Source of the DNA: Lepidodermella squamata
Taxonomy: Eukaryota; Animalia; Gastrotricha
Length of the DNA stretch: 64,000 nt
Direction: 5' to 3'
NCBI GenBank assembly: GCA_047495785.1
Contig: JBLDXI010000017.1
Coordinates: 2,232,001-2,296,000 of the forward strand
The notes below the pieces were generated by a model. That model worked only from the letters and a program-made list of their open reading frames with translations. It was not told the origin of the DNA and made no database searches. Within the stretch, counting starts at the first letter, position 1. Every line of letters begins with the position of its first letter. Shown in pieces: positions 5,310 to 48,701 of the stretch. The translations under genes and the position numbers were made by a program.

Positions 5310-5665
5310 TTGACGCTGGACTATCTTAACATCAGCATCTACTTCGTAAAAACAATGGTAAATTAACTCTCAAAATTTGTCAAATGAATAGAAAATATGC
5401 CGACACGATGACAACAGCGAAAAATGAGGTAGCACGCGTGTCACAACTTTTCGACATAACTCAACTACCTTTATTCTTAAATTTTGAGACGCCGCTCATG
5501 GCATTATCTCATCATAAACTTGTTATATTAAAAGGTCTTATCAAACTTTATTTCTGCATAATGAAAACTCATCACTCACTTTTACACAGCCTGGCAGCAT
5601 TTTTTTATTATATCAACAAAAAATTCACCAGTGTGATTATGCATATTTGAACTAAATCTATGACT

Positions 5666-6550
5666 TCAAATGAACGAGCTCGATGATGTTCTAGACGCTT
5701 CGCTATGCGACGACGAGGACGTATTCGGCGTAGCGGTAACTCGCGAAGATTCCACCGGGCCAACTGCGCCGCGACGCAAGCCCCTGAGAAGTGCCAGCGA
5801 TAAGACGGAAAAAAATTTGCTCCACGGTTGAGTTATTTTCAGCATCATAATCTCTTCTTTTGGCGGTGATTTCTGACTAAAAAAACCTGTAAATGAGTTC
5901 GAGAAGCCAGGTGAAGGTGACGAATTATTAGAGCCGTCTACCATTAGCAACTTTGTAAAATTCTCAGATAACAGCATAGTCTTAGTAATTGAAGCGAACT
6001 CCTGAAATAAAGCTGCTTGTAAACATCCCACAAGATCCTACAAGAAAAATTGTACAAAATTCGCGAATTAATTTTGCGAAGCTCACGATAATATGCTCGG
6101 CTGTAACGCCGAAGCTGGAATGTTTCGATCCTAATTCCATAGTATATTGGATGAAAGCTTCCTTCTTATCCAATCTGAATATACATCTTTGAATGGCGTG
6201 CATAACCCGCATCGAATGCTGCCTGTATAATTTCATTTAAATTTCGATCCACCTTATAGTTATTTTTACTTTGTTTCCCAAGAATAGACAACATCTTCTT
6301 TCGAACGAGGTAGGACTTTGCTTTTGACGAAAATTTGAAAGGCGGCTGAACTGACCTTGAACAGACTGTAAAACAGCGATAATTTATTGCAATAGCGAAA
6401 AATTACTCAAATGACTCACTTCAAAAAGGCCGTGACGCCGATATTTTCCCACCGATCAGCGATGAACTCAAAACTGGTGCGCAAAATAGCGATATCGCAT
6501 TGGGTGAAACAGTCCAAGTACCAAAATTTCTGCAGTAGATTAATGTCCAT
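5666..6550 (-). CDS. Globin 1 (subfamily A), ~46 aa G-H insertion
   Basis: MDINLLQKFWYLDCFTQCDIAILRTSF..IGVTAFLNLFKVSSAAFQIF(CD1)..WETKQH(E7)SMRV..LGSKH(F8)SSFGVT..W(H8)SKFF. Introns at 6366-6419 (B12.2), 6223-6269 (E5.2) and 6038-6086 (G7.0). Confidence 0.85.
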
Positions 6551-7969
6551 TTCTAGCTCATAAAAAGTAGTTATGTATTGATTAGTTCGACTTCGCCCAA
6601 AATAATATTACCCACACCCGAATATAAACTGCCACCAATAAAAACCGAATATAATATATTGTTTAATCAGACGCAGTTTTTTCTGGCTCTTCTGGAAGGA
6701 ATCGATAATTCACAGTAAATAAAATGCAAACAGCCGCTAGTTTAGTAGAAAACTTCTATGTAGGTCACTGCTTTATTAGTCTTGTGGCTCATTAAAAGTA
6801 TATACTTGGCGAAAATTTGATTAGTCCTTCTTGAGAGTGCGAAATGCGATGTTTTTTTCGGGTGAAAAGAAAAATAATATGCGCTCTCAAACAAAAACTT
6901 GCTATCGATCGATCGAAAATGCGGAAGAAATAATAATTATAGCAGCCGATTGAGAAGTGAACCACAGCTGGAAATGAGCTTATTGCGTTCAAAGTTCTGA
7001 AATCCAAGGTGCGCGCGTGTGAGAAAAAGGAATGCACGCTAAAATGTAGTGAAAATTGGCTATATGATAGGGGAAAATCAATGACTTTGAGCAGCGAGAC
7101 GGTTCCGCATGATGTGTATGCGGTTTTTTTCCTAAAAAATCAATCAGAACAGACAGTTGATAAGGTGATAGCAATTACGGCCTGGAAAATGAAGATGTGA
7201 TTTGGACAAATTAAAGCGATCAAAATTTAATGCCCTTGTTTCTTGATTAGCGAGTATGTTTGTGTGCTATTACTATAAGCAGTCCCAAGAGGAATACCTG
7301 TGTCGCATTCAAAAATAGATCTGCCCACGTGCGAAGGTGACGCATACAGCTCTATTACCAGTCCCTTGATGTCGAGGTATCGGTTAGCCGATGCGAAAGT
7401 TCGATTCGGTCAGCATCCGGCTTGTCCCATGAGAAGATGACAAATGACGTCGGAAGCAATATATTAAGACCGCATGTTGTTGACTTTAGAGCTCAGTTTT
7501 GATTATCCTTTTGCGTTATAGCATAGTTTTTTATACAGCAATATGTGGGTTCCGGATGTATGGGCAGCCGATAGCTCGGCTAATTCATCCGCCTGGCTGT
7601 CTAAATGTCGCATGTTTTTACGGCGAGAAAGCAGGTGAGCGTCGTTAACGGGGTCGAAGACATTTAATTTTAGTTTCGCTTCGTTGCTATGGGTATAGCG
7701 TGGTTCAAAATAACGATTTTACGTGACTGATATTAATTCATGAGTTTTATTAAAAAATTACGCGCTCCTTGTAAAAAAAAATACTCCGTGATCAAGGCGT
7801 AATTTGATTTCATCATTCTTCATATAATAATATAGTATTACGTTTCGTAATATCTAAGACGCTCCGCGCGGCTTATATATTGTTTTTCGCGGATGCGTTC
7901 CCATTTTAATCCTTTCGCAGCTATATAAACACTATTTATTATGTTTTTGGATTCATCAGAATAATTATA

Positions 7970-8723
7970 ATGCCGCTCTTTCATAGAACTGATAAAATGT
8001 CCAAGAAGCTCGACTTCTCGTGGTTTTTTGGAGGCTACTCTAGTCAGGAAATTTCATCGCTGAAGAACGATCTGTCTCTAATCGAAGACAAAATCGATGA
8101 CATTGGGGTTTCTGCTCTTGCCAGGTGGGACATTTTGCAAATTAGTCATTAAAATTATTTTAAAATTTGGTTAACGCAGGCTGGCAGACGAATGCCAAGA
8201 GGCTTATGCCGTATTTTCTGCGAACAACTTGCTGCCGGCGAAAAATGGCACCAGATTGCAAGATGCGCCTCAATTGCGAAGTCACGCGCATCGCATTATG
8301 CAAACATTGACGAAATTCGTTGAAAAGCTCGAAAATCGACAGGAATTTCTCGACTTCGCATCGACCCTCGCAACAATACACACCGGCTATGGCATAAAGC
8401 CTGATTTTATCATGGCAATGATGGCTAGTTTACGCCAGGCTCTTTTCGACCAATTGATCATTTCACGTGAGGGCGATGAAGGCTTGTCGATGATGCGGCG
8501 GCGTTTTTCTCGTCGGAGCTCATCGCGGTCTTCGAGCACGTGCGAAGGTTGCAGCCGACGAGACAGTGCTTCCAGTACCGCGTCTCACGACGACAGCAGC
8601 GACGATGGCGATCGGTGTTATACTGCTCCTGAGTTTGATGTCTGGAATAAACTGTTTATGACGTTGTCTTTAGCGCTGATTAACGGCATGGAGCGGTCTA
8701 AACGCAGTAAGAAGAGCCGGTGA
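7970..8723 (+). CDS. Globin 2 (subfamily B), ~50 aa Ser/Arg-rich G-H insertion containing CEGC
   Basis: LDFSWFFGGYS..IGVSALAR|LADECQEAYAVF(CD1)..LRSH(E7)AHRIM..LATIH(F8)TGYGIKP..EFDVWNKLF. Single intron 8125-8179 at B12.2. Confidence 0.85.
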
Positions 8724-9082
8724 TTTTCTTCTTTTACACAATTACGCCACGAGATCTATCGATGAAATTACCGGTGCTTGATTGACGATTTCTTGGTTTA
8801 TTTTAATAAAAAGAGACCCTGCCATGTTTTAGCTGTTTTCTTTTTCTTCCAAACGCTAATTCACTAACTAGTCAATCAAAAAAGATGCGGGCAAAAAGCT
8901 CACAGCTGCACAGCGGTGACCTAGTAATAAAATTTCAGCCGTCGAGGTGCACACTAATTACGAGCTCTTTATCGCGAGAGCAAAAAGCTCACTCGTACGC
9001 AAAAGAAACTACTTCTGCTTTCACTTGGAAACTAAATTCTGCTAATTACACGATAACTTCGAGTCCTCTGCCATCTATCACC

Positions 9083-10365
9083 ATGGATTTACCACTGGAA
9101 TGGGAAAAGGTGAGTCGGATGACAAACATTCGTTGGCTTATTGGTTGTTTATTGCCATTGCACAGCTTCTTCGGTGTTCAAACTGCGAAGTCTTGTTTTA
9201 TGCCGACAACAAAGTCAAACAGAAGATGCTACCCTGCCTTCATCGGTTCTGTGTTTTGTGCTTGCGCAAAGCCGTCGTAAATAAAGTGCTGACTTGTCCC
9301 ACCTGTTCGAAGAAATACGTTTTGACATCGTCCGGCCTGAAAGGTGAGCTCATCGAATCGAAATCGAAAATAAGTGTTCCACCTTAAATAATTAATTTAA
9401 AAGTGTTACTTTTGCACACGTTTTTAATCTCATTCGTTTTTTTCGCAGATTTCGTGACTGATTACGCGCTGTCGAGAGTTGCCGAACTTTTGTTCAAGCA
9501 TGGAGAGAGTACTTACGATCGTTTTGAAACGGTAGACGATGACTGTAAGCATTTCGCCATGGCGAGCGATGCGTTGACGGTTTGTGGGCATTGCGAACGC
9601 AAGTTCTGCCGGATTTGCATAACTCGTCACGTCGAACGCATTCGAATCGAAGCGACGTGGCTCAATCATCATGTAGGTTTAAACCGCAGTTTTCAATTAA
9701 AAATCGATGAACCCATAATCATGAAATATAGGTGGCAAATCGCTTCGAAAGTTGTCGCTCCTCGATCGAAGAAAATGGTTCGAAGCTCAAGCTGGAAATT
9801 GAGGAGCAAGCTGTGATGGCCAAGAAGTCTGTGGTCGATTGTTTCGATGCAATGATGGCTAGGCTCGTCGCTTCGAAGGAGAAGCTTATTTCGAAGATCG
9901 ACGAGGTGAGGGCGAAGCAACTATCTGCCGTTGAAAGTTTGAAAGAATCAGTCACGGTCGATTTTCGAGAAGATCTGGAGCACAAGATCAATGACCTAAA
10001 CGATATGTCAGTTCTTGAAATATCTCCCGATGTTATAGCTGGGATTTTCATCAAGTTGAGCGAAGCTGACAAGCGGTTTTCATGCATCGAAAATGTCGGG
10101 CGACTTGGCAAAGTTGGTATCAAGTTCAAGCCGAATTCATCTAGCGGCGATAGCAACTTTGTTGGCCTGGGAGAAATCGTGCTCGAAAACGGCATCAGAT
10201 TAGACAAGGTAAGCGATTGGTTTTTAAAGTCGCCTCCGAATCACCCATCACTAAAAGATTCAAGTTGTCATATTACCGAACTTTCTTTGCTTTATTTCTC
10301 ATATGTCTAAGGTATCGTGGAGTAAGAATAGGGTGACATTTTCAACGGAAACGATTAGGCTTTGA
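9083..10365 (+). CDS. TRIM/RBCC protein (RING, degenerate B-box, coiled coil); 3' end uncertain
   Basis: MDLPLEWEK|LLRCSNC..LPCLHRFCVLC..CPTC is a C3HC4 RING. CKH..CGHCERKFCRICITRH is B-box-like. ORF 9732-10208 is helical. GT-AG introns link the fragments. Confidence 0.75.
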
Positions 10366-10479
10366 GTTTAGATCAGATAGAGTTTCTAGTTTTGATTGCG
10401 TCTCAATCGTAAATAAATTTTGAAAATATTATAAATAGTATTTGAAAATAGTATAAAATACCGGTGCAACTTTGAACAT

Positions 10480-11400
10480 TTCACGCGAATCTGTTTTTGT
10501 CGGGAATCAGCGAGTGGATGGCTCTTGGGAATTTCGTAGAATATAGACATCGTTGGGGTCTAGCATTTCGCAAAGTTTTTAGTAACCCAGCCCTCATGGT
10601 CTCTCCTGAAAAGGCATTTTTAGCTTCCGATCCTGACGTGGAACGAAACTTTTTCGAAACGGTTCTTGAAGCTGGTCAACGCAATGTCGTATAAAAATCT
10701 AGTCGCTTTGCACTGAGAATCACCATACTCAGAAACTCGTTGATCAACATAGTCGACGAATCGCTTCCAATGCTGACTGTTTTTTTGCATCGTTCCAGTT
10801 GTCTCGAAACCTGACGCTATAGCTCAGCAACGTCATCGGAGTAAAGCGTCGCCTTAATTGCCGGCAGGGGATTCTTCATAAGAAAATTCGAGCTCTTGTG
10901 GTAGTTTTGACAGTTTTTGTAGTAGTTGTAGTTTTCTTCACCAACGCCCGATTATGGTTATTGCTAACATAGGTCAGGTATGCGTGAGCTAGCCACAGTT
11001 TCGAAAACATAAAAGCTTGAAGGTGAGACATTTTTCTGGCTCGCTTTCGATTGGCAGCCATCGGCCAAAATACGACCTTGAGTGCCAAAGCGAAGTGCCA
11101 AAGCAAGTTGAAATCTCGAGAAAGGCAGTTACCATCAGAAACAACGTCTTAGATATCATATGAAAAATGAATAAATTCCCTTTCCTTAGCCATATGTTAG
11201 GCTTTAGTTTGCTTATCGCCAGCATTTCTTGGTCGAGACAATCCCACTTGTTGCGAACCTTCATTAGAACTTCAAAGTTGTTGCCAATGTTTCCGAACTC
11301 ATCCGAACAAATTTAGAAAACTTATGCCACTGTAGCCTGGTCTTCTTTCCTTGCGTTCACCGACTTCTTGCCAAATGTCTCCAGCTCGGCTTTCCCCGTT
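10480..11400 (-). mobile_element. Decayed Penelope-like retroelement remnant (GIY-YIG C-terminus followed by stop-interrupted ORF sequence)
   Basis: NNFEVLMKVRNKWDCLDQEMLAISKLKPN (~11190-11285) fits the GIY-YIG end motif F.IL...E.L.I..L.P.LN. Flanking protein-like frames contain in-frame stops. Confidence 0.45.
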
Positions 11401-11848
11401 CATTTGCAGAATTTAAGAAGAAATGAGCGAATAATGGTTGAAATACAGGAAAAATACATGTTAAGCCGCGTGACTCGTTCCCTTATGTCAGAGACGTTGA
11501 GTTCTTCAAGGTACAAATGAACGATTCAGGCTATCACTGTCATCGTCCGGTGGTACAAAAATTATCGATACAATAACAATGTTATTGTACTTTCCAAAAT
11601 ACAAATAACATGCGTTTAAGGTGGATTTTTTTAATTTTCTCATGTGGTAATTTTTTTTAGATATTTCGAATTATTATTACCAACTCGACCATTTGCCCCA
11701 AATTAGCAAAATTCCTAAATTTCGTGCCTAAATTTGCCCAAAGAACACGCATGTTTCTGAACAGTAGTTTACTTTTACTAATAAATGGTTAAAACGGGTA
11801 ATAACATTTTTGAGTCCACGACCAGTACGGGAAACGGGAACAAGACAA

Positions 11849-12600
11849 TCAATTTAAGAAATCTTTGAACTGCATATGTAGCTGCTGAAATTTCAAAAAC
11901 TTCGAAAACTTGATCGCATCATCCACATCAGGAGGGCGGTACTGAGACAGAGTGAAGGAGTTCATATTTTCGTTTAGATCCGCTGCTTGTTGTTTGTTCG
12001 CGCTAGGTTCATCCGAAGGCTCCTCGACATTCGGGCGGTTCGAAGCAGGGGCGAGAAAATTTTGCATATTTTCGCGCTGCTCCTCCGGCTTCACCTTTCC
12101 ATAATTGACAAGGGCGCTCGTTGACGCATGACCGGTTATCTGGATAACTTTTTCTGGAATTACTCCATTGGCCAGTAACTCGTCCACCAGGTATTTCCGG
12201 GCGGAATGACCGGAGAGTTTTTTGTCGATTCCAGCTTTTAACGCAGCATTCTTAACCAAATCGTCGATTGTATGCTCGCCTAACTTCCCGCGTTTGTAAA
12301 ATCGCTCTTTTGATCCGATTCGCCATTTTGAATTGTACATGAGATAAAATGGATCGCTGTCTCTGCAGAAACCGACCGGTCTTTGGGCACGGAAAGCCTT
12401 GTAGATAGCAACAGGACACAAAGGATTGCCCGGGACAGCGTAAGCTCTTGGCGTGATGGCTCGATTTTTGAACCCTTTCCTGGTTTTCGTGATGCGCTCA
12501 TGAAATTGCAGGTACTCGTTTACAGGATTCGAGGTATTTTCGTTCACCAACTTCGCATCACCACAATGAGTAGGTCGATGGTTTTGAGTGGCGCAGTCTT
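11849..12600 (-). mobile_element. Crypton-type (DUF3504-like) tyrosine recombinase, 5'-truncated or frameshifted
   Basis: ERITKTRKG, CPVAIYKAF...RP....PFYL, KLGEHTI, SGHSAR, ITGHAS..ALVNY retain the catalytic K, HxxR, H and Y. The upstream LR..HR...GD motif is split across frames and there is no ATG. Confidence 0.8.
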
Positions 12601-12760
12601 GAAGAATTTGTTGTCCTTCTTACTCTCTAGAATTGTGAAGGGAATGTGTCTTTATAATTTTCAGGTTCTACTTCACTTGCAAAATTAGTGTTTGAGCAAT
12701 ATTCATTTTCTGAATTTAGCTTCGCCCCTTCTTGAAATTACCCTGCATTTTTTCATTTAG

Positions 12761-13855
12761 GAGAACGGCTTTTCGGCTGCTGGCTATTTTCACCGCCTCG
12801 CAAAGTTGGGCAGCGTTGAATCGATTAGGGAAATCTTTGACAAATTGCCAAGACAAACTGTCAAATACGCCGTCGAGCACCTGGATGAACACGATGTTAG
12901 CAAAACGATTTTGCACCAGGCCTGCGAATTCGGCCGTGTAGACCTGGTCCAGTACCTGGTCTCAAATGTCGGTGCGGACGTTCGGTCCAAGGCTTGTTTG
13001 GGTGCGCGTAGCCATCGAGACGATGCTGATTCAACGCCGATTCACCTGGCAGCTCGAAACAATCATCTCGAAATCGTTAAATTTCTGTGCGAATTCGATC
13101 CATCGCTCGCCGAGTTGAAGGAATTCAAGGATCGAACACCATTGCATTGCGCTGCTGAAAATGGCCACCTGGATTTGGTTCAGTACCTCGTCAAACATTT
13201 GAAAGTCGACGTGAACGCGAAAGACGACGATGGCGCGTCTGCTATTCGCGGGGCGGCTGAATGTGGCCACTTGGATGTTGTCAAATTTTTGGTTGAAAAT
13301 GGCTCAGATCACGATATTCTCGGGCAACACGAGGACTATTCACCTGTTTTCGCTGCGGCCAAGTCGGGTTATGAAGACGTTGTTGAGTTTCTTGTTCAAC
13401 TGGACCCTGATGTCCTTAGGCTACCGCCCGCCAAATATAAGAAGACGCTGTTAATGACCGCAGCTTTTTACGGGCAACGAAACGTGGTCGAATATTTGAT
13501 ATCACAGCGCTGCGACTTGGAAGAGCGCTTTTGGGTAGATGGCGAAACGGCGTTGATGATGGCGGCTTATCAAGGTCATTTCTCGACAGTTGTGGCCCTC
13601 GTCGAAGGTGGGGCAGATGTGGAGAAGCTTAGCACGCTGTCGAAAAGCAACCGTGAAAACAAGACTGCTCTACATTTCGCAGCTGAAAGTGGCCATCTGC
13701 CGATTGTTGAGTATTTATGCCATTTCCGTCCTGACCTGGCGACTTTGAAGAATAACAAAAAATGTACTGCTCTGGAAATGATGGTCAGTCACGGCATGAC
13801 CCAGAGGCACCCAGCCGTCTACAAATTCTTGAAAATTTTCGCTAAAGATCTTTGA
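12761..13855 (+). CDS. Ankyrin-repeat protein (~8-9 repeats); first exon not identified
   Basis: Repeated TPLH.AA..GHL.VV.YL motifs. The long exon follows the acceptor tttcatttag (12751-12760) in frame. AATAAA near 13953. Confidence 0.88.
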   Translation, partial: ENGFSAAGYFHRLAKLGSVESIREIFDKLPRQTVKYAVEHLDEHDVSKTILHQACEFGRVDLVQYLVSNVGADVRSKACLGARSHRDDADSTPIHLAARNNHLEIVKFLCEFDPSLAELKEFKDRTPLHCAAENGHLDLVQYLVKHLKVDVNAKDDDGASAIRGAAECGHLDVVKFLVENGSDHDILGQHEDYSPVFAAAKSGYEDVVEFLVQLDPDVLRLPPAKYKKTLLMTAAFYGQRNVVEYLISQRCDLEERFWVDGETALMMAAYQGHFSTVVALVEGGADVEKLSTLSKSNRENKTALHFAAESGHLPIVEYLCHFRPDLATLKNNKKCTALEMMVSHGMTQRHPAVYKFLKIFAKDL

Positions 13856-15085
13856 TTCGATGAAATAGGCTGGTCCTATTTGATCCATTTGCTTTGAAAC
13901 TTTCTTGATTGTTCATCTTCCGATTTCCTGGATAATCGCTCGATTATTGTCAAATAAAAATGGAATTTTTTTTATTTATTCAATTTCTCATATTCACTGG
14001 TGAAAATTGAAAAATAGGGCGTGGCACGAAGCAAAGAAACTGAGCGATTTTCAGGTTTCTCTCAGCTCGGGTCCACTTTTTCTTCTGGATTTTGAATTTT
14101 CAAGCTGCCGTCTGTGGTACTCCTTCGTCCTCCTTAAAAGACAAAGAAGTGCATTTGTTTAGATTTGTTTTGATGTTGCAAGGCATAGCATTTTATGGAA
14201 ATTTAGAATATCCAGCATTAACCCGATTTTTAACCCGATAAAATTGGCTGATTATTTGAAGTTGAGGAGATATTGCGCGGTGAAGCGAAGTGAAACCAGT
14301 TCGTAAAAAAAATGTCTTGTAGCGCGGAGTTTTGAAAATTTGCATTTTTCATTCGTAAAAGTTGAATCCTTGATATTGATCGATTCCTGTCCTGTGTTCA
14401 TTATCTTGAAAGTGGCATCCAAAGCATTTATCTATTTCAAGCTCACTACGTCATAATTTTTGCCCAGCCCCGCTTGTCGTTTGCTATTTTCGTCTTATAA
14501 TTGTAATTTTCTTCAATTGCTGGAAGAAGGACCTAAAAACAATGTCCGATTTTCTGCATTCAATGACAATTCAATTAGAGTGCATTTGTAAGTTATCGAA
14601 CGAGAAAATGAGCGAGGCGGTGGGGAAGCGCGGGTAAAATCCGGGTGTTTTTAATCAATTTCAATCCGCCCGCTTTAACGGAATTCGGTTAGATGGGCGG
14701 AGAAATCGCTGAAGTGGAGTTATTGTCGAACTATGCGCAAACTTCCGTACTTGATTCAACAACAGCATATAATGTATATTTGCTTTCATTATCTAGCCGG
14801 ATTGTTTTCCAATACGAGCAATCACGACTGATTGCCCACGCTGAGAGGATCTAAAAAAATGTGTACAGTACATTTGCGCGGCGTCATTGTTTTATGCTGT
14901 GAAAACTGATCGCATGAGAATTCAAGTACGCTGAATTTTTATTGCATTATGTATAACATGTCCAAAAGCAGAAGTGCGCTTCCGGAAAACAGCGCATTCA
15001 TCCTTCAGCTGATTTTCCAAGCTATAATTCAGTATATAGCATGGAGCTTATCAATTAGACCACATAGGCTGCTTTTTAATGCGGA

Positions 15086-16262
15086 ATGGCAAATGGAATA
15101 ACCAGTCACCGCTTTGACACTAGGGTTAACTTGGATTTGGCGTGGTTTTTCGGCGGTTACTCGCGCGATGAAGTTGCAGCTTTACGATCGGATCTTGACC
15201 TCATCTTACCCCATCTTGATTCGATGGGTCTATGCTGCCTTGCGAAGGTAGCCGCCGTTTGTAAAGGTGCACATGATATTTTGGCTTCGGCAAATTTGAT
15301 GCCAGATGATCAGCAGGAAGTTTTCAATTCTGACGAGGCAAAAGCTCATGGTCGCAGGATGATGATGGCATTTGTCGGAGCTATTCAAAGAATCGATCAC
15401 AAGGAGGAATTTCTCGATTATATTAGGAGCCTTTCAAGTGTTCATTGTGGTTTTGGAATAAAGCCGGACATGATAATGGTAGGTTTTCTCCAAGTTAACC
15501 TTTTCCTGGGTAGCATTTAATGTAGCTCTTGACTGGCCACGCTTACTTTATATTGCGACCTATAGTTCATGGAAGAAGGATTTTCAAATGGCACCAGATT
15601 CGAGAAAATATATTCGAAATTGAATTTAGCGGGGATTTTCAAAAAATGTGAAATAAATTGGGACAAATGCAAAAAATGGAATTTCATGCGGAAATCTGAT
15701 TTTAGAATTACTTAGAATTGAGTGCCGCACTCTCATTGCATCCGGCTTACAATCAATATAGGAAACTGAAATCAGCCAGGAAATTTGAAAATTTCGATAA
15801 TTGAGAGTCGGATCTATTTGAAAGTCGGATCTTGGAATTCCGACACGTGCCTAGTTGTAAAGTGGCTCAAAAACCAAAACCCCCAAGAGTTAAAATTTGT
15901 GATCAATTTGAGTTTAATGACCTTTAAAATCGTAATTTTTTCATCTCTGACCTCAGGCTTTCATCGCTTGCGTCCGGCAAACAGTTATCGACCACCTGTT
16001 GGTTCTGAAAGAAACTTGCGACACATCAAACGAAGAAGCTGGCAGGCTAGCTCTCAGTCGAAGGATTTCATCATCACCCGGTGAATGCGGAAGCTGTCGA
16101 AAATGCATCGGCTCGCTTGCGATATTGCGCGCCAACCCGGGCCTGTACAACGCCCGCGAATTCGACCACTGGAACAAATTTTTCATGACGCTATCGCTGG
16201 CTTTTATCAACGGCATTGAGAGGTGTACCCAGAGACGGTGTTCCCAGAGCAGGAGAAAATAA
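15086..16262 (+). CDS. Globin 3 (subfamily B), ~46 aa G-H insertion containing CGSCRKC
   Basis: LDLAWFFGGYS..MGLCCLAKVAAVCKGAHDIL..AKAH(E7)GRRM..LSSVH(F8)CGFGIKPDMIM|AFIACVRQ..EFDHWNKFF. Intron 15479-15956 at G7.0. Confidence 0.85.
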
Positions 16263-16901
16263 TCGCATGCCGGAGACGGATACAAATCAAAATGTGCAAG
16301 CCTCTACTCGCAAAATAATTCCCTTTGATACCTTATTTTTTACATTAATCGTTCAGGTAATTTCTCAATAAAAACGCGAAGAGTATTGATTCAGAGCATA
16401 TACCGGATTGAAGGGTTTTTGTTAGTTCAAGATGTCGAGGAAACGAGTTCTAGGTGCTACTGCGCGTTGAGAAAGCCCATCAAAAAAATGGCTCAACTTC
16501 CGTCTCGCCAGACTAGAATAATTTCCCCACGTTAAGTAAGAGCCGCGTGATCGATAATGACTTCACATATTCAGGGAAATCTACGCATATAAACCTGTTA
16601 GGAAAACTCGGCTGTGATAATAGCGGAATACATTTGCACAAACGCGTCTAAATCATTTATTTTTTTACTAGTAATTGGATCTCACTGGAGAATTTTACGC
16701 AGAAATAATAATACATTATTTTGTTACAAATCGATCAATTTACAACAAATGCCGCTGGTAATTTTAGAAAAAGCACATCGATGTCTGATATTACATTTGT
16801 GGGCGTGTTCTTGATGTTCATTCAGAGAGCGCGCAAAACCACGCTTTTGATAGCAGCCTTTCGCTCGTGAATCATCTTTTGTCTTATACTCACCTCGAAA
16901 T

Positions 16902-17645
16902 ATGGCGGATAGTCACACTAGGATGGATCATGACACTAGTAACCCTAGTAATCTTGACTTCGCCTGGTTTTTCGGCGGTTATTCCGACGAAGAGACGATT
17001 TCCCTCCGGTCCGATCTCGAACGGTTGAAGCCTCACATCGATGCTATGGGCGTTTGTTGCTTGGTGAAAGTAGCCCAGGGGTGCAAAGATATTCACGACA
17101 TCTTCGTTACAGCCGACATTCTACCCGCTCATCGCTACGAGGTTGCGAGATCTGAAAAAACAAAGGAACATGGCCACAAAGTTATGATGTCTTTCGTCGG
17201 CGCGTTGAATAAGATCGATAACAAAGACGCTTTCTTAGACTACATGGAGAGCTTGTCCGGGCTGCATTGCGGCCTTGGCATCAAACCTGACTACATCATG
17301 GTAAATTTTTGCTGAATTTCTTTGAAAAAATTATGTTTATCACCGCAGAATTTCATCGCTTGCGTGCGTCAAACTTTTCTCGATCACCTTCTAGTTATTA
17401 AGGAGGATGATTCATCTCATGATGCTGAAGAGAACGCGGAGGAATTGCCGCAATCTGAGACTAATAGCGATTGCTTGTGCTGCCGGCGATTTCGTGGCTC
17501 TCTAGCAGCAAAACACAGCGACCCAAGCCGGTATAATTTCCGCGAATTCGATCACTGGAACAAGTTTTTCATGACTTTCTCATTGGCTTTCATCAACGGC
17601 ATGGAGCGCCGGGCTCGCTTGAAACATGGGATTAAGAGTAAATGA
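16902..17645 (+). CDS. Globin 4 (subfamily B), ~44 aa G-H insertion containing CLCC
   Basis: LDFAWFFGGYS..MGVCCLVKVAQGCKDIHDIF(CD1)..TKEH(E7)GHKV..LSGLH(F8)CGLGIKPDYIM|NFIACVRQ..EFDHWNKFF. Intron 17301-17348 at G7.0. Confidence 0.87.
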
Positions 17646-17749
17646 TAATTTATTATTGCAAAAAAAAGAATTCTATGGCAAAATGGTCTTCAAACATATT
17701 AATAAAAATTTGCATGACAACTGCCGTAAAATCAAAAATAATAAATAAA

Positions 17750-18435
17750 TTATTTCAGCTTTCCGTTCACAGTTTTTTCGCAATCTGAAATTCGGTCAGT
17801 CGTGTCTTCAATAGGCGGCGGTGATTCGAAAAATTGCATCAGGCCAATGTTCAGCGACATGAAAAATCGATTCCAAACAAAAAATTCGTGGGATTTTTCG
17901 AAGTCAGCATAATTTCTCATATTTTTGCAATCTTGACCGGCCAATTCGCATAAAATTGCATTCCTCAGGCAGCCAATTAATACCTGGAAAAATTAAACAA
18001 TCATTGACTTTCAAATAATTCGATGTATCTTACTGTGAAATAAGTTGGATGAACACCGTAGGCAACGTGGCGTGATGAAAGTCCTTTCACGAATTCGACG
18101 TAGGCAGGTCGGTTATCAAGCCTATTAAGGCACTTTTCTATCGAGCTAAGAACCCTCAAACTGTGAGCTTTCGTTTCCCAGCTATAAAGCACATCGCTCC
18201 GATTCGTTGGCAGGACTTGTTTATTTATAAAGACAGCAAAGGCATCGGGGTGAAGGTCGAACAGGTTGGTGAAAGCAGCTATTCCTATTCGTTCCAAGAC
18301 CTCGGGCTGAGTCACTCTATTTCGAAAAGTTGTCCTTAATAGCGTTATATCTTCGTGGGAGAAGACGTCACAAAACCAGTATTGATCGTAATTTTGCGGC
18401 ATAACTTCCGTCGGTGAACCTTGCTCACTGCTCAT
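17750..18435 (-). CDS. Globin 5 (subfamily A), short ~11 aa G-H insertion
   Basis: IGIAAFTNLFDLHP(C2)DAFAVF(CD1)..WETKAH(E7)SLRV..LSSRH(F8)VAYGVHPTYFT|VLIGCLR..VWNRFF. Intron 17984-18033 at G7.0. Confidence 0.9.
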
Positions 18436-19066
18436 GATTATCGCGAATAAGAGCCTATAAAAGTGAACTCAACAAGAAAAACGCGCTAGTCAATATATAT
18501 TAGCCGGCAAAGAGGTCTCGCAGCATAATAGTACTTAAGCGGAAAAAGAGGCAAAAAAGCGATTATTGACGATTGACATGAATTAAAATTAATGCGGTAA
18601 AAAAATAACAATTGCATTATTTTACCCGAACGGAGCAGCATGTTTATACAAAAACAAAGCGGCGCCTTTTATATGGATTTATGGCCGCTATCTTCGATCA
18701 CAAACATATTTGTCAGCCATATAACCCTCCTATTTCTTGAGCGATGTTTCAATTAGCCTCTTCAGACAAAAAAAATCGACCAGTTCATGCGTTCTTTTCC
18801 CACTGTGTAAGAAAATAATCGCTTTGATGTATGCGGATTCGAAAACAGCGATTGGTACATATTCTTGATAGGACGTAGGAGAATAACACCCATATTGGAT
18901 TTACGCCGCATATGCCAGTGAATGATCGCCCTCAAGGCGGCTGTAAAAACCATATTATATGGCTATTTTATGAACGCGTAAAATTGAATTTGCACGCGCA
19001 AAGAGGCGTTTCAATGAAAAATTACCCATAAATAAATCGGCAATTTTTTTACTCGTGAAAATTAAA

Positions 19067-21573
19067 TCAGTCCAAGTAATCTCTTGTGCAGTCTTCAAAA
19101 ACCGAGTTGCCATTCAGAGTTCTAAGGTAGACGCAAGTTTGATTGAAAAGCCCATCGCTGGCATCGTTAGCGTGGGAATAGTTGTAAATAGCCGCTCCGT
19201 TGATGGCGCAGAAAAATGCGGCGCTTGTTATCAGGGCAAGAATGTCGATGAATTGGCTCAGCTTCATAGCCCGCGGTAAAATGATAGATTCTTCGTGTTT
19301 GTTGAAAGGAATCAGCCAGTTTAAGCGCCTCCACTCCGTTTTCACGACTTCTTTCGGAGTGGCCGGCCGCTCACCATTTCCATCAGAAGGTTGAGGTACG
19401 TCTTTCGAAGAGGACGGCCCTTCACTGCCAACCTGGCCATGGGAGTGAGGTTTCAGTCGAATAACATTCCGCCTCATCGGCCGCTCAATCGCACTTGTTA
19501 AAAAGCTGATTATCGAGAAATAACAAGCGCAGCCGAAGCAAAGTAGACCATGAAGTAGGACGTAGTTACTAAGGAAGATTCCTTTCGTTGTTTTTGGGAC
19601 ATTAGCCAACACTAAACCCTGTATATAGGTCAGCGAAATCAAGACTGTAACAGCGAAGGTCGGGCGATCTGGGCCATTTATCGGTAGGGCAAAGGCAATA
19701 AGTTCCACCAGAATCGATAGGACAAAGCAAGGGAGAAGGATATTATTGACATAATACCCATATTTTCGCTGGAAAGTGTACGAAAACGTGATAGTTGACC
19801 TGTCGTTGTTAACAGTGTCGCGAATTATGTTGCCAGTAGGGCTTGGCAGTAAATTTCGAATTTGCACCCGCGAGGCGATAAAGTTCCAGCTATCTGTGCT
19901 CTCCATGTTCAGCGAACTAACAGTTTGAGCCTTCCAAAACTCGATCGCGCCGAGGTAGGACAACTTTGGCCGGAAAATGAACGAGCAAGTCTGCGTATCA
20001 AACGGGAAGGTCCACATATCCATGGAGCAGTCGACCGTAAATTTACCGAAGCGGAACCAGTAGAATGACATATCGCCATCATCGTACTGCTCCTGGCCGG
20101 CTTGGGGAGGGTTAGGCTTGATTTGCATGTCATGGTCAAGCCCATCTAACATGGCGTAGTTTTCTTTAGCGTTGGCGAGTAAGATTGGCGGAATCCAAAA
20201 GTCGTTGTAATTACAGCAGCCGTCATTCTTCCCCGAGCCGAGATTTACGACTTTGAAGACCTGGCTCCTTAATAAGGAGAGAAATGTCGAGTTATCAGAC
20301 TGGCATGTAGTCTTCCATGTCGCCAAAAGTAGGCCTGACATCGTGATGCTTTCATCGACTTCATCGATTGAAGTGAACTGGGGTAGGAAGTTCAAGCCGA
20401 TGATAACAGCTGATTGAGCAAAGGACGAGCTGTCGCTGTAATTCGGAACAGGGCTCGAACGCTCAGGGGACAGATTCTCGCATTGATTGATAAAATCTTG
20501 AGCCATTATCGTACTCTCGTAAGACTCCTGAATCGTTATCCCCAGAGTTTTCGGCGGTCGAGAGTATCGCTGCTTCTCACCTAGCGTTTTTACGAAAGAA
20601 TCGTACCAGTCCGCCCCGGCCTTATTAACAAAATTGTTCCGCTTATTTCCGTTATCGTTAGTTTGATCTGAGCTGCTTTCAACCCTCAATGGCTCGGCAG
20701 ATGGGTCACTGCTTGCAGGCATTTTGGCGGCTACGTCAGCCGCGGTTGTTGTCAAAAGTCGGCTCGGTATCGTTGTCCCAACTGGCACTGTTGGGCTGGG
20801 CGCGGCTGTTGAATCAACGAAAACCCCTGGATCTGTGACTGGAGCATACGAGTAATACGGGTAATTCGTAGTTGGCATGTTCCAATCTGTCGCCGTTACA
20901 GCCCAGTTACTGAAGGTCGTAGTGAAGCTGTTAGGGTTGTAGGTTGGTCTGAAGGTAGTGAATCGATCTCTTCCGTCATTATAGTCGGGACCACGGGTAT
21001 TTCGAGGGTCTAGGCACTAGGAATAAAAGTTGACTATAAGTTGAACTCATATAGTTACCTGCGGTCCAGAAGCCACCAGGTGTTATCCACGGCCAATACG
21101 TGCTTGGGACATTCGGCCGATAAGTCATTGTGTTAGGGTTGTTGTTCGGCCTGTTTGTCGTGCCATAGGCATTTCCTCTCGATCCTCCGTCGTTATAATC
21201 AGGGCCCCGGTTGTTCCTATTAGATTCTGAAAATACGAAAATAGAGCTGAAGCTCGGGAAATCTAGATAAGGAATTACCCGTTGTCCTAGCGCTAGTAGG
21301 TTGAACCCACAGCGTCCATGGTTGTACGTTATTATTATTTCCAGTGTTTCCCCTATTATCCGTTGATGACCATGGTTGTACGTTATTATTGTTTCCCGTG
21401 TTTCCCCTATTATCCGTTGATGACCATGGTTGGACATTGTTATTGTTTCCAGTGTTGCCCCTGTTGTCTGTTGATGGATTGATATTACCAGTATTACCAG
21501 TAGTCCTGCCAGATTGTGCATCACAGTCGCCAATCGAAGCAAGCAAAAGTACGAAAATGCTCAAAATCATCAT
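19067..21573 (-). CDS. Cys-loop ligand-gated ion channel subunit (~801 aa) with a long low-complexity N-terminal extension
   Basis: Cys-loop CSMDMWTFPFDTQTC, FWIPP, pre-M1 R..GYYVNNILLPC, four TM segments. Signal peptide MMILSIFVLLLASIGDC. Introns 21227-21278 and 21010-21058 join the exons in frame (2406 nt CDS). Confidence 0.85.
21316..21477 (-). repeat. Three 54-nt coding tandem repeats (STDNRGNTGNNNNVQPWS)
   Basis: Directly visible. Units differ mainly at synonymous positions. Confidence 0.9.
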
Positions 21574-42639: not shown

Positions 42640-45600
42640 ATGCCGTTGTTGACCGACTCGCTGTTGCTATGCGAAACAGCGCCGGTTGTTGTGGACGCTA
42701 TTTTTGTCGACTGCTCTGTTTCTGTTTTCGACTGCTATCATCGCCAGCTGATAAAAAATTGGTTGAATAAGCATTTCGTGGCAGGTCATTCCACATGTTT
42801 GGCGTCGTTCGAGGCCGAACTCGGCGCTTTGATCGCAAAAGCTGTGGCGAATGCGGACGGTAATTGTGATGCGAAATGGTCGCTGCGGTTTGTCAATGGA
42901 TTTCAGCTGCTCAGCGAGTGCGACGCATCGATCCGGCGACTGCTCGAGTCGGGCACTTGCGCGCAAATGATTGTTGATTACTTCGCGGCCGCCATAAATA
43001 GATTTATTCTTGACACTAATAGCAGCACCGCCACCACCAGCTCGCCATGCGGCGGCGGCAGTGGCCTTGTCTATTTAGAGGCGAAGCTTTTGCTCAAATT
43101 GGTTCAGATATTTTCGCGCATTTTCGGCAAAATTCAGAACCATCGATCGATTTGTGTGCCCGCTCAGCTAATCGAGGCGCTGTGGACCCTGGCCGCGTCG
43201 GATTTATACGAATTGGATGTAAGAATAAATGATCATGATAATCCACTATTATGGTGGCGGTGAATACGAACTAGAAAAAAAATTGATGTTTTTTCATCCA
43301 GGTTCGCCAGGCATCGACTAATCTCATTGTGCAGTTGGCTTCCCCTAATCAGCAGTATTTTTCTTTCAAAAATCGATCTGAAGCGCTTATCGAAAAAATG
43401 GTCCCGAAAGATAGGCAAACTGCGTCTAAATTGTGCCTAAAAATTCTGGGCGCTGGGGCTTTCTGCAGTCAGCTCTTACCTGCCCAATTAGCCGCCGATG
43501 AATTGAATAATGGAGAAATTTTGTTGTTGGTTTTACTGGAAGATATCTCAAATTGTTGTTCAACAAGGTTGTAGAAAAAAATGAGAAAAAATATTTTAAT
43601 TTCGTACATTTACAGGATGTCGACGTCTTTTGCGATAGCTTTCTATCGCAGTTTATTAAGCTGGACCAAGGCTGCCGTGTAAATTTACAAAAAATCGCAG
43701 AATAAACTGTGAAAATATTGAGTTATGTGTTATAGAGCGGCATGCGCGTTGCGTTCAAATCAAATTTGGTCCACCTCAAATGTTTCGCCGGTCATGCGGC
43801 TATTCGTTCAGTTGATAGAAAGCGGCTGGGATTGTCATGCAGAGGTGAAATATCATTTCGCCATCGTGAATTTTTTAATATTTTTTTCTTAAGGTGGTGC
43901 GAGATTTGGTTTCTGAAGTCTTCGAAACACTGCTTATGTTATTCAGAAATACGATGAATTTATCTTCAAATGAGGACAATTTCCTGGGTGATCTGATTTG
44001 CACGCTACTGCGAACTGACTGGCAGTCACGGTTGAAATATCGCCCGCTATCCCAAATCACCGAGCTATTTGGCCCTGCGATTCTTTTCGAATGCGCACGA
44101 AAGGTTGATCTTGACATTCCTGAGAAAATCAGCACGGCTTTCTGTGATCGAGCTATCGCACCCCATGCTGCTACATTCATTTCCGCTATCGTAAAATCAG
44201 CTATGTGTCACTCGTCTTCGAACTTCGACGAGGACGGATTTTTGGAGGGTATGATAAGCCACGTGGTCGATGCGGCTGCGTGCGACGAGGCGGTAACACG
44301 GCATTTTGTGACATTTGCCGTGCCGAAACTGTTGAAAGTTCGTGGAAAGCGGGTTGTTGACGTCATTATCAACCGGTCCGGAAGTCGGCCTGGCCTCGAT
44401 CGGCTGCCGGACGCTGAGTATTTGATTTTGTTCTCTGTATGCCGGACAGCGCGTGCCTCTGGCCTCTATGAGCTGGGCGACGCGGGCAGCGAAAACGGAA
44501 CCGCGAAAATGGCCGTGCTATTGAGTGAAGCACTCAATCACTCAAACATACACGTATGTGCCTTGTTGCATGATCTAATTACTAGCAGTAGTAGTAGTCG
44601 TAGCGCATTCATCGTGGCTTATTTTCCGCCCCGATTCTCCGCCGACCAGAAGTCCCTAGGGCATTGTTTTTGCTATTTTGGCCGCGCAATAATTTTTCAA
44701 TTCATAGAACTTTGATTAAACTACTCGCGGCTATAAAAGCGCCATTTTTTCAGTGCAATATTGACTATTTTTTCCGGTCTCTGCCCTCACAACATCCGTA
44801 TTATTACTGCTACCCAAATGGCCTCATATTACATTACTTCCTGTATTCGTTGCAGGTGGCAGGGTTTTAAGTCAATAATTTTATTAAAAAAGTAGAACGT
44901 AAATAACGGGAATAATAAATTATTGTTTTTCTACAGATTCGGCTCGAGGCGTTTGGCTTTCTTAGCGAGAATGTCCGCATTGGCCAAGCGCTATGGGCGT
45001 GGGAGCTAGATGCAATCGAGCGATTCATCGCCGCGTCTTTCAAGGTGGATTCCAGCGATTTCCGCCAGGCTTACCGCTCGCTTTTCCGAAAATTTCTCAG
45101 CCGATTGCGAGACAGTGGCAATGTGTCCGAACGGCAACGGCCCGGGTGTGAATTAGTCAAAAATTACATCGGCTTTCTCGATCGAATGATTGGCCTCGCG
45201 CTGGAATCGCTCACATTTCCAGGCTCAGCTTTCGCCAGGCGATCGACAGCTCTCAATCTGCTGAATGTGATCGCTAGAGTTTTCCCGAAAAACGAATGCA
45301 GCTGGTTCGATTTCACGAAATGCTGCTTCGAATCGCGTCATACCACCTTAATTTTGCTGCGGGCCTTGATGCGTGATACGTACGAAGACAACAAAAAACT
45401 GGCGTATGAGTTGTTATCGCTATTCTGGCGAAATTGCGAGAGTTTAGTTGAGAGGGATGAAATTTTCGAGAAGGCTACCAGTCTTTCACAGAGCACTAAT
45501 CCTCAAAATGGGGTAACTGCGGCTTACCTGTTCAAATTACTGGCTAGTAGATTTGACGCAAATGGCGCAGGGATGGCTGAATTTATGTCTAGTACCTTGT

Positions 45601-48600: not shown

Positions 48601-48701
48601 GTGGTTTTACCTTCTATTTCGGACTTGATAAGCATCTGATTGGTTCGGATAGTTTGGTTCTGGGCGATTCGACGCATCTGGAATCTATGCTGATCTGCTG
48701 A
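42640..48701 (+). CDS. THADA: THADA/Trm732 armadillo-repeat protein (multi-exon)
   Basis: DUF2428 motifs CCWRSIKEVS, RHRGAFE, TRRSAGLP, VHALNILRAL, WSIRNS..LFSAL..RVFG. Confidence 0.9.

Follow-up and report, generated by a model that had tools for sequence, protein, structure and literature searches.

A cluster of five divergent globin genes with a variable, mostly long G-H loop in the gastrotrich Lepidodermella squamata

Five spliced globin genes

The window analysed here is a stretch of 64,000 nucleotides of Lepidodermella squamata (assembly GCA_047495785.1, contig JBLDXI010000017.1, positions 2,232,001 to 2,296,000 of the forward strand); all positions given below count from its first letter. 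It contains a cluster of five globin genes, glb1 to glb5, whose proteins are lengthened to differing degrees between helices G and H. Both strands of 5600-18520 were read and the introns were placed by means of a script. The five genes occupy 5666-18435 and are intact; each has one open frame, and the introns are exclusively of the GT-AG type. An exon piece of every gene is matched by PF00042 (Globin) above the gathering cut-off of 22 (22.3-43 bits, E 7e-11 to 2e-4); the match of glb1 lies on exon 3, and that of glb5 has an E-value of 7e-11. The first-pass annotation, which was made from the sequence alone, had proposed five spliced globin genes within about 13 kb, and this proposal is confirmed in both respects. 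A tblastn search with all family proteins as queries found no further globin pieces in the window beyond these five genes.

The gene glb1 (5666..6550, minus strand, 244 residues) consists of the exons 6550-6420, 6365-6270, 6222-6087, and 6037-5666, which are separated by introns at B12.2, E5.2, and G7.0 of 54, 47, and 49 nt. The gene glb2 (7997..8723, plus strand, 223 residues) has the exons 7997-8124 and 8180-8723; its sole intron (B12.2, 55 nt) splits an Arg codon into AG and G. In glb3 (15086..16262, plus strand, 232 residues; exons 15086-15478 and 15957-16262) the sole intron is at G7.0 and spans 478 nt (15479-15956). The same position is interrupted by 48 nt in glb4 (16902..17645, plus strand, 231 residues; exons 16902-17300 and 17349-17645) and by 50 nt in glb5 (17750..18435, minus strand, 211 residues; exons 18435-18034 and 17983-17750). 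The intron of glb3 is thus the only long one, the other six having lengths of 47-55 nt. A search of this reference intron of 478 nt for an inverted repeat or a transposable element found neither.

In glb1 and glb2, the B12 codon is interrupted after its second base, which is the classical B12.2 site in helix B. The phase-0 intron of glb1, glb3, glb4, and glb5 is located five residues past the Pro of the FG corner. In the alignment this site corresponds to G7.0 of cytoglobin, if an FG corner shorter by one residue is allowed for. The two pan-globin introns are therefore distributed as a mosaic: glb1 contains both of them, glb2 only B12.2, and glb3 to glb5 only G7.0. Pairwise identity of the proteins is 56% for glb3 and glb4, about 40% for glb2 compared with either of these, and 32% for glb1 and glb5. 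Between the two groups (glb1 and glb5 versus glb2 to glb4) it drops to 21-29%.

All sequence motifs that had been quoted for the genes were found as written. An aromatic motif W[FY]xxx[FY][ST] preceding helix A is present in all five proteins; glb1 and glb5 share YSWETKxHSxRV, and glb2 to glb4 share LDxxWFFGGYS and EFDxWNKxFMTxSLAxING. His E7 and His F8 occur in all five and are the sole nearly invariant columns of an alignment of 85 sequences. Position E10 is an Arg or a Lys in each protein, and position CD1 is a Phe in glb1, glb2, glb4, and glb5 and a Leu in glb3. A profile that contains the five genes aligns with cytoglobin and neuroglobin over helices A to H.

Relatives, phylogenetic position and gene order

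With HMMER, a profile deduced from the exon pieces of the window was compared exhaustively with 1.84 billion representative proteins (E <= 1e-3), and the search yielded 218 matches. The close relatives (P0005, P0007, P0009, P0011, P0013, P0015, P0017, P0018, and P0039) are single-domain proteins or exon-sized fragments, and they originate exclusively from ENA and Logan metagenome assemblies. Their contigs were retrieved, and spliced genes were rebuilt from them. A word-index search with exon 1 of glb5 gave no match; the family is too divergent for a search of this kind. Two further groups of matches were set aside. The multi-domain globins of echinoderms, a dinoflagellate, and Bodo had the highest total scores; these are sums over 3-14 domains, and the proteins were therefore rejected as near kin. 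Searches of the PDB with single sequences matched annelid giant haemoglobin chains (9e-6) and neuroglobin or cytoglobin (0.014-0.016), which is too weak to classify the family.

Of the 81 next-best single-domain matches, 41 have an N-terminal MG and then a Cys, Ser, or Thr, which is the signature of N-acylation. Those with a named source come from Priapulus, a thrips, a copepod, a crab, an oyster, a clam, Nematostella, and a gorgonian, and several have been named "neuroglobin-like" automatically. The supplement of Song et al. 2020 assigns the Priapulus globin to clade three, the globin X clade. When these next-best matches were included in the profile, it retrieved fish "x globin" at 1e-64. 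The five proteins of the window start with MD, MS, MA, MA, and MS, respectively. None of them has a Gly at position 2, and in-frame stops lie upstream of each ATG, so that the N-terminal anchor typical of the relatives is gone.

A phylogenetic tree of 81 rows, chosen as the best profile matches, was calculated with IQ-TREE under LG+C20 with posterior mean site frequencies (PMSF) and a bacterial outgroup. In it, the five genes are united with about ten metagenome proteins in a single clade (support 100/99; stem of about 1.5 substitutions per site). Its sister is a clade of 46 rows (93/82) that contains fish globin X and the clade III globin of Priapulus; the family is not nested inside it. The proposal of a lineage-specific family is borne out by this clade and by the fact that, among the 1.84 billion representatives, its close relatives are metagenome proteins only. 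P0018 is basal in the family, and the support for the remaining members is 100/96. Within the family, glb2 to glb4 are contained in a clade supported by 100/95, and glb2, P0005, glb3, and glb4 group together with 100/98. From a second species, one relative groups with glb1 (100/99) and another one with glb5 (99/79). The first-pass annotation had distinguished two subfamilies; the one formed by glb2 to glb4 is a clade, whereas the YSWETK genes glb1 and glb5 constitute a grade in which that clade is nested, glb1 being nearer to it than glb5. The YSWETK motif of this grade is ancestral.

The gene order is conserved between two species. Contig L001, which stems from the second species, contains a glb5-like gene (plus strand), a glb2-like gene (minus strand), and a glb1-like gene (plus strand) side by side. 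After flipping the contig, order and orientation are those of the window, namely glb1 (minus), glb2 (plus), and glb5 (minus). Protein identity between both species is 35-47%, and 37-42% for glb1 and its relative. The window differs from L001 by the duplication that gave glb3 and glb4 and by a block of 5 kb. In the second species, the glb1-like and glb5-like genes contain B12.2 alone and the glb2-like gene is intronless. Ankyrin genes lie near the globins both in the window and on L001; they are only 25% identical and were not counted as additional evidence of conserved gene order.

Taken together, tree, gene order, and introns suggest a course of events in which the ancestral unit would have been the trio of glb1 (minus), glb2 (plus), and glb5 (minus) that the second species has kept. 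The genes glb3 and glb4 would be later tandem copies of the glb2 lineage, and the ancestral introns B12.2 and G7.0 would have been lost in a mosaic pattern.

The G-H loop and its possible role

The length of the G-H segment was determined for all rows in one alignment as the inclusive count from the G7 column to the column of the Trp in helix H. It amounts to 72 residues in glb1 (5822..6037, minus strand), 77 in glb2 (8415..8645, plus strand), 72 in glb3 (15957..16172, plus strand), 70 in glb4 (17349..17558, plus strand), and 37 in glb5 (17873-17983, minus strand). The distances of 71, 76, 71, 69, and 36 residues that had been given for the five genes are correct and differ only in the manner of counting. 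Members of the family from other sources have 28, 36, 50, 52, 53, 67, 85, and 182 residues, so that the family as a whole ranges from a canonical corner of 28 to 182 residues. For 78 globins outside the family, including fish globin X, the median is 26 and the maximum 33, save two outliers of 71, which are a protein of the rotifer Brachionus and one junk row, apparently a mis-translation. The statement that all five genes have an extended segment needs to be qualified: the long segment is real, coding, and kept in the mRNA of glb3 and glb4, whereas the extension in glb5 comprises only about 10 residues.

Two relatives mark the ends of this range. P0018 (L008:6001-6987) is intronless and combines a segment of 28 residues with a C-terminal tail of about 140 residues that is rich in Gln, Pro, and Ser. 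A relative of the glb2-4 clade (L007:453-1518; Logan SRR23086389) has the longest loop of the family, a segment of 182 residues with nine Cys in the insert. Since the basal P0018 has a canonical corner, the loop was expanded inside the family, and more than once.

The inserts are of low complexity, and 62-79% of their residues are disorder-promoting. The insert of glb1 is rich in Ser, Pro, Gly, and Phe and contains no Cys. In contrast, a cluster of Cys followed by Arg or Lys is aligned among glb2 (TCEGCSRR, 8538-8561), glb3 (ECGSCRKC, 16083-16106), and glb4 (DCLCCRRFR, 17469-17495, following an acidic first half of the segment), and it recurs in P0005 (SCCNRKC) and L007 (GKCCHRG) from other species. 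Among the family loops compared, it is absent from glb1 and glb5 and from L005 and L006, two relatives within the glb2-4 clade. There are 3-4 Cys per insert in glb2 to glb4 and P0005. The cluster is positioned past the midpoint of the loop, 26-35 residues ahead of the Trp in helix H and about two-thirds along the insert in glb3 and glb4, and the spacing of its Cys varies (CxxC, CxxCxxC, CxCC, CCxxxC). A motif CxxCxxW occurs in none of the five genes. The insert of glb2 further contains an Arg/Ser-rich stretch with three [RK][RK]x[ST] sites. The lead-in to helix H, [YF]Nxx[ES]FDxW, is conserved across paralogues and species. A pair of His flanks the loop in glb3 and glb4 only, one at the end of helix G (DHLL) and one before the Trp of helix H (FDHW); the equivalent positions are Gln and Val in glb2, Gln and Ala in P0005, and Glu and Val in L007.

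Structure prediction was performed with AlphaFold2 (AF2) on two substitutes for the spliced proteins of the window, namely P0005, which is an intronless relative of glb2 from another species, and exon 2 of glb2. The model of P0005 (210 residues, alignment of 85 rows) has a mean predicted local distance difference test score (pLDDT) of 84 and a predicted template modelling score (pTM) of 0.82. The pre-A helix and helices A to C and E to H exceed a pLDDT of 90, and the stretch that links G to H (residues 137-172) has values of 49-69. Similarly, exon 2 of glb2, which encodes the protein from B13 onwards, was modelled with a core above 90 and an insert at a pLDDT of 52-58. Foldseek matched globins exclusively in the PDB, with a probability of 1.00 and target-normalised TM-scores of 0.70-0.82; the haemoglobins of Lucina and Scapharca come first, followed by neuroglobin and cytoglobin, and the E-values are weak and similar for all globins. 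The predicted structures thus combine a confident globin core with a disordered G-H loop, and the assignment to the globin fold is upheld by both the Pfam matches and this comparison.

Transcription was assessed for 14900-18500, which covers glb3 to glb5, with two public runs, X1 and X2. X2 is a genomic run and covers everything. X1 behaves as a transcriptome: it shows poly(A) loose ends, leaves intergenic bins uncovered, and has introns removed precisely. A contig of 731 nt from X1 joins 15477 to 15956 in glb3, leaving out 478 nt with GT..AG ends, and extends from there to 16324 without a break; the same contig covers the entire exon 2 including the insert, without any joint. A poly(A) loose end in X1 at 16389 places the polyadenylation of glb3 near this position. 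Within the glb3 intron, the transcript run further displays low-depth "opposite strands" joints and repeated loose ends. For glb4, contigs of X1 contain the junction 17299 to 17348 (GT..AG, 48 nt), and exon 2 is tiled by contigs 17355-17459, 17430-17561, and 17532-17924, again without a joint. Hence, the modelled junctions of both genes are exact, and their inserts, through which contigs pass unbroken, are coding and kept in the mRNA. The 5' untranslated region of glb4 extends to at least 16825, and this transcribed leader confirms the in-frame stops upstream of the start codon. A low-depth GT..AG joint indicates a possible small intron (16757-16824) in this region; the spliced leader keeps the in-frame stops. 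The gene glb5 is covered by contigs 17532-17924 and 18046-18248, and its intron is bridged by none. The former contig spans both the 3' end of glb4 (plus strand) and the last exon of glb5 (minus strand); the convergent 3' ends of the two genes therefore abut or overlap, which could give rise to an antisense overlap.

In order to assess selection, the differences between the window and the runs X1 and X2 were projected onto the gene models. Of 27 coding differences, 23 are synonymous and four are non-synonymous, and three of these four are located in the insert of glb4. The G-H segment of glb4 has eight synonymous versus three non-synonymous differences. The corresponding numbers for the glb3 insert are three versus zero, one of the silent changes affecting a Cys codon of the cluster; all four differences in the complete G7-Trp segment of glb3 are synonymous. 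X2 has a net in-frame deletion of 3 nt in the glb4 insert (17414-17417), near several non-synonymous differences. The glb4 loop displays a length polymorphism among strains or closely related species. Purifying selection acts strongly on the core; on the loop, which is translated, the constraint is weaker but not absent.

On balance, we consider it probable that the five genes are functional and belong to a fast-evolving family of cytosolic, single-domain haem globins that is restricted to a single, poorly sampled invertebrate lineage, stands beside globin X, carries a disordered and evolvable G-H loop, and may have a redox or gas-related role. The family would have lost the N-terminal Gly2/Cys acylation signal of its relatives, and the G-H corner would have been expanded repeatedly to an intrinsically disordered, hypervariable loop. 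The core (His E7, Arg or Lys E10, His F8, and mostly Phe CD1) is expected to bind haem, probably in a bis-histidyl six-coordinate state like that of the relatives; His E7 permits six-coordination but does not demonstrate it. Such a haem core might perform or sense redox, nitric oxide (NO), or reactive oxygen species (ROS) chemistry, rather than transport oxygen in bulk. It is the kinship with globin X that would favour redox chemistry or signalling over oxygen transport. The loop may extend away from the folded part of the protein and act as a module for its regulation or targeting. In glb2 to glb4, the Cys cluster and its basic residues would most plausibly be an S-palmitoylation site or a redox or metal site, which could set where or when the globin acts, and the loops of glb2 and glb3 also carry candidate RRxS sites of the type used by basophilic kinases.

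Several points weigh against this interpretation. The placement as sister of the globin X-type sequences could change with full sampling, since the tree contains labelled references for globin X alone and for none of the other clades of Song et al. (I, II, IV, and V). Membership of globin X proper is not established, because the introns E10.2 and H10.0 and the acylation signal are absent. CD1, usually a Phe in the family core, is a Leu in glb3 and P0005. The RNA evidence is confined to glb3 to glb5, with the junction of glb5 unbridged. As the Cys cluster is missing in L005, L006, glb1, and glb5, it cannot explain the loop in general, and the variable length and sequence of the loop may mean that much of it is neutral.

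The alternatives mainly concern the loop. A specific form of the preferred interpretation, which we hold tentatively, regards the Cys cluster and basic patch of glb2 to glb4 as an internal S-palmitoylation site that replaced the lost N-terminal myristoyl/palmitoyl anchor. Loop Cys clusters beside basic residues are typical palmitoylation sites, as exemplified by the linker of SNAP-25. The nearest relatives are N-acylated membrane globins (PMC7771090; PMC3176823), Gly2 is missing in all five proteins, and a motif of two to three close Cys followed by Arg or Lys is aligned in glb2 to glb4, P0005, and L007, the remaining loop not being conserved. Moreover, the motif is situated in a loop that AF2 predicts to be disordered and accessible, and the change in one of its Cys codons is synonymous. 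On the other hand, the Cys spacing is not fixed, the motif is absent from glb1, glb5, L005, and L006, and the family may simply be cytosolic. A more elaborate version, which we regard as doubtful, is that an N-terminal lipid anchor was swapped for a G-H module: the Cys/basic block would be lipidated, metal-binding, or a disulfide, and the kinase sites would switch membrane attachment or haem reactivity. The module would afterwards have diversified among dozens of paralogues of a single obscure animal lineage. If true, this would be a previously undescribed way of tethering or regulating a globin.

It is also possible, albeit in our view rather unlikely, that the long loops are tolerated, drifting surface insertions without a specific function in a relaxed, fast-evolving family and a compact genome. 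Their length of 28-182 residues, the little sequence conservation between related genes of two species, their low complexity and predicted disorder, the in-frame indel polymorphism, the accumulation of three of the four non-synonymous differences in the glb4 insert, and the canonical corner of the basal family member are all consistent with drift. It is less easily reconciled with the excess of synonymous over non-synonymous differences within the inserts (eight versus three in glb4, three versus zero in glb3), with the conservation of the Cys/basic block and of [YF]Nxx[ES]FDxW across paralogues and species, and with the persistence of the loops, which have mostly grown, in nearly every member since before the species split.

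A zinc or redox (disulfide) clasp, by which loop Cys together with nearby His would fix the loop at its base or act as a switch of haem reactivity, seems unlikely. In neuroglobin and cytoglobin, ligand affinity is known to be controlled by a disulfide. The inserts of glb2 to glb4 and P0005 provide 3-4 Cys each (in glb3, CxxCxxC plus a fourth Cys), and glb3 and glb4 offer His at the end of helix G and before the Trp of helix H. However, only the recent duplicates glb3 and glb4 possess this His pair, AF2 predicts no ordered site (pLDDT about 50), and the Cys spacing varies.

An adaptation to hypoxic or sulfidic habitats, which the first-pass annotation had considered possible, is supported by none of the findings, and it is very improbable that the proteins carry oxygen or sulfide as part of such an adaptation. 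The best structural matches include the haemoglobins of Lucina and Scapharca, which share a pre-A helix; this is a generic point, the Foldseek E-values being weak and about equal for all globins. The sequence relatives are non-respiratory, globin X-type proteins and not clade I haemoglobins, E7 is a His as opposed to the Gln of the sulfide-reactive haemoglobin of Lucina, and there is neither a signal peptide nor a sign of very high expression. Finally, the idea that the inserts are unrecognised introns or the genes pseudogenes, for which nothing but the unusual length and the limitation of the RNA data to glb3 to glb5 speaks, can be dismissed almost entirely: contigs traverse the inserts of glb3 and glb4 jointless but lack the modelled introns, each of the five genes has an open frame, 23 of the 27 coding differences are synonymous and the indel is in frame, relatives from another species keep their frames open through the loops, and splicing at the only good donor/acceptor pair noticed within the glb2 insert would cause a frameshift.

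The block between glb2 and glb3 (9100..13855) does not belong to the globin family according to Pfam. It contains a RING/TRIM-like gene (about 9100-10310, plus strand) with a RING finger followed by Cys/His-rich and coiled-coil-like open reading frames (ORFs), a Crypton-type tyrosine-recombinase ORF with matches to Phage_integrase and DUF3504 (11849-12550, minus strand), and an ankyrin-repeat gene identified by Pfam (12806-13855, plus strand). In the second species, the glb1-like, glb2-like, and glb5-like genes are adjacent and this block is absent; the Crypton-type ORF may be the remnant of a mobile element linked to the rearrangement of the cluster. Elsewhere in the window, a B-box ORF is found at 51140-52123. 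A single-exon ORF of 603 residues (19067-20878, minus strand) has weak Cys-loop ligand-gated channel domains and a low-complexity N-terminal extension of about 160 residues. An intronless THADA/Trm732-like ORF (45045-48701, plus strand) encodes 1218 residues, compared with about 1900 in the animal proteins; it is 61% identical to a metagenome protein and 37-39% identical to THADA of molluscs, a nemertean, a brachiopod, and vertebrates. The animal is without near kin among the named proteomes, and a spiralian affinity is only weakly indicated. An Rfam scan of the window gave no match.

Comparison with known globins

The globins serve as a textbook example of how proteins and gene families evolve, and the functions of the non-respiratory animal globins (globin X, neuroglobin-like proteins, the radiation of C. 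elegans) are still not settled. The cluster adds a clade next to globin X that is strongly supported and had no name before, together with a gene trio that has the same order in two species and a mosaic loss of B12.2 and G7.0. In this clade the G-H corner, which is normally among the shortest links of the fold, has become long, disordered, and evolvable while being present in the mRNA and under coding constraint. A literature search of incomplete coverage found no published description of the family, nor any of an internal site for lipidation or metal binding in the G-H loop of a globin. What we regard as new are the clade itself, the size and near-universality of the loop expansion, the evidence from RNA and selection for a coding loop, and the conserved Cys/basic block. 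If this block is a true lipid, metal, or redox site, it would represent a new route to localise or switch a globin; otherwise, the cluster is a well-documented but ordinary case of lineage-specific globin diversification, for which a nematode precedent has been published.

The multi-domain globins (S. purpuratus XP_011670837 and those of Patiria, Asterias, the dinoflagellate, and Bodo) have an unrelated architecture, and the top match among them scores about 23 bits per domain. Neuroglobin and cytoglobin resemble the family in the matches over helices A to H, in fold, and in His E7 and His F8; they differ from it by a canonical GH corner, and their single-sequence E-values are weak (0.014-0.016, with 0.014 for neuroglobin). 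An intron at E11.0, the position in neuroglobin, is absent from the five genes. Membership of neuroglobin was rejected for this reason and because of the weak PDB match; the best named relatives are of the globin X type, their automatic name "neuroglobin-like" notwithstanding.

Globin X and X-like proteins (clades III and II of Song et al. 2020; the N-acylated membrane globins of Blank & Burmester) are the best profile matches outside the family. Like its members, they are single-domain proteins of about 200 residues with pre-A and post-H extensions, His E7, His F8, a basic E10, and introns at B12.2 and G7.0. Globin X binds to membranes by N-acylation and has been proposed to protect against ROS (PMC7771090; PMC3176823). 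In contrast, the five genes lack the N-terminal Gly2/Cys3 acylation signal. Moreover, the introns of globin X are B12.2, E10.2, G7.0, and H10.0 (PMC3206486), whereas E10.2 and H10.0 do not occur here and glb1 has E5.2 instead. The family has a long stem branch of about 1.5 substitutions per site and an aromatic pre-A motif of its own, and its G-H loop comprises 37-77 residues in the window and up to 182 in relatives, compared with about 26-28 in globin X.

Long G-H corners have been seen in animal globins before. The first-pass annotation had taken it as established that animal single-domain globins have a short GH corner, which is overstated in view of the published extensions of 17-40 residues in C. 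elegans (PMC2228317) and the 71 residues in Brachionus. The latter protein (B. plicatilis RNA19008.1, "neuroglobin-like"; P0101 in our search) matches the profile over the whole domain with an E-value of 7e-6 and has a G7-Trp segment of 71 residues. Unlike the family, it forms a long branch within the globin X-type clade, its loop sequence is unrelated, and its N-terminus, which begins with MG, is extended by 150 residues. Its long loop probably arose by a separate expansion.

A parallel of kind only is provided by C. elegans, likewise a small animal with a compact genome, in which globins have undergone a large, lineage-specific radiation and have become very divergent; no nematode globin was present among the named top matches of the profile search that were checked. 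The GH interhelical extensions of 17-40 residues in these proteins (40 in F49E2.4 and 32 in R102.9) contain introns in some cases (Hoogewijs et al. 2007, PMC2228317). The extensions of the present family exceed these in length, adding about 45-50 residues in the window and as many as about 155 in one relative, and nearly every member has one. Furthermore, the family keeps the ancestral introns B12.2 and G7.0, both of which C. elegans has largely lost.

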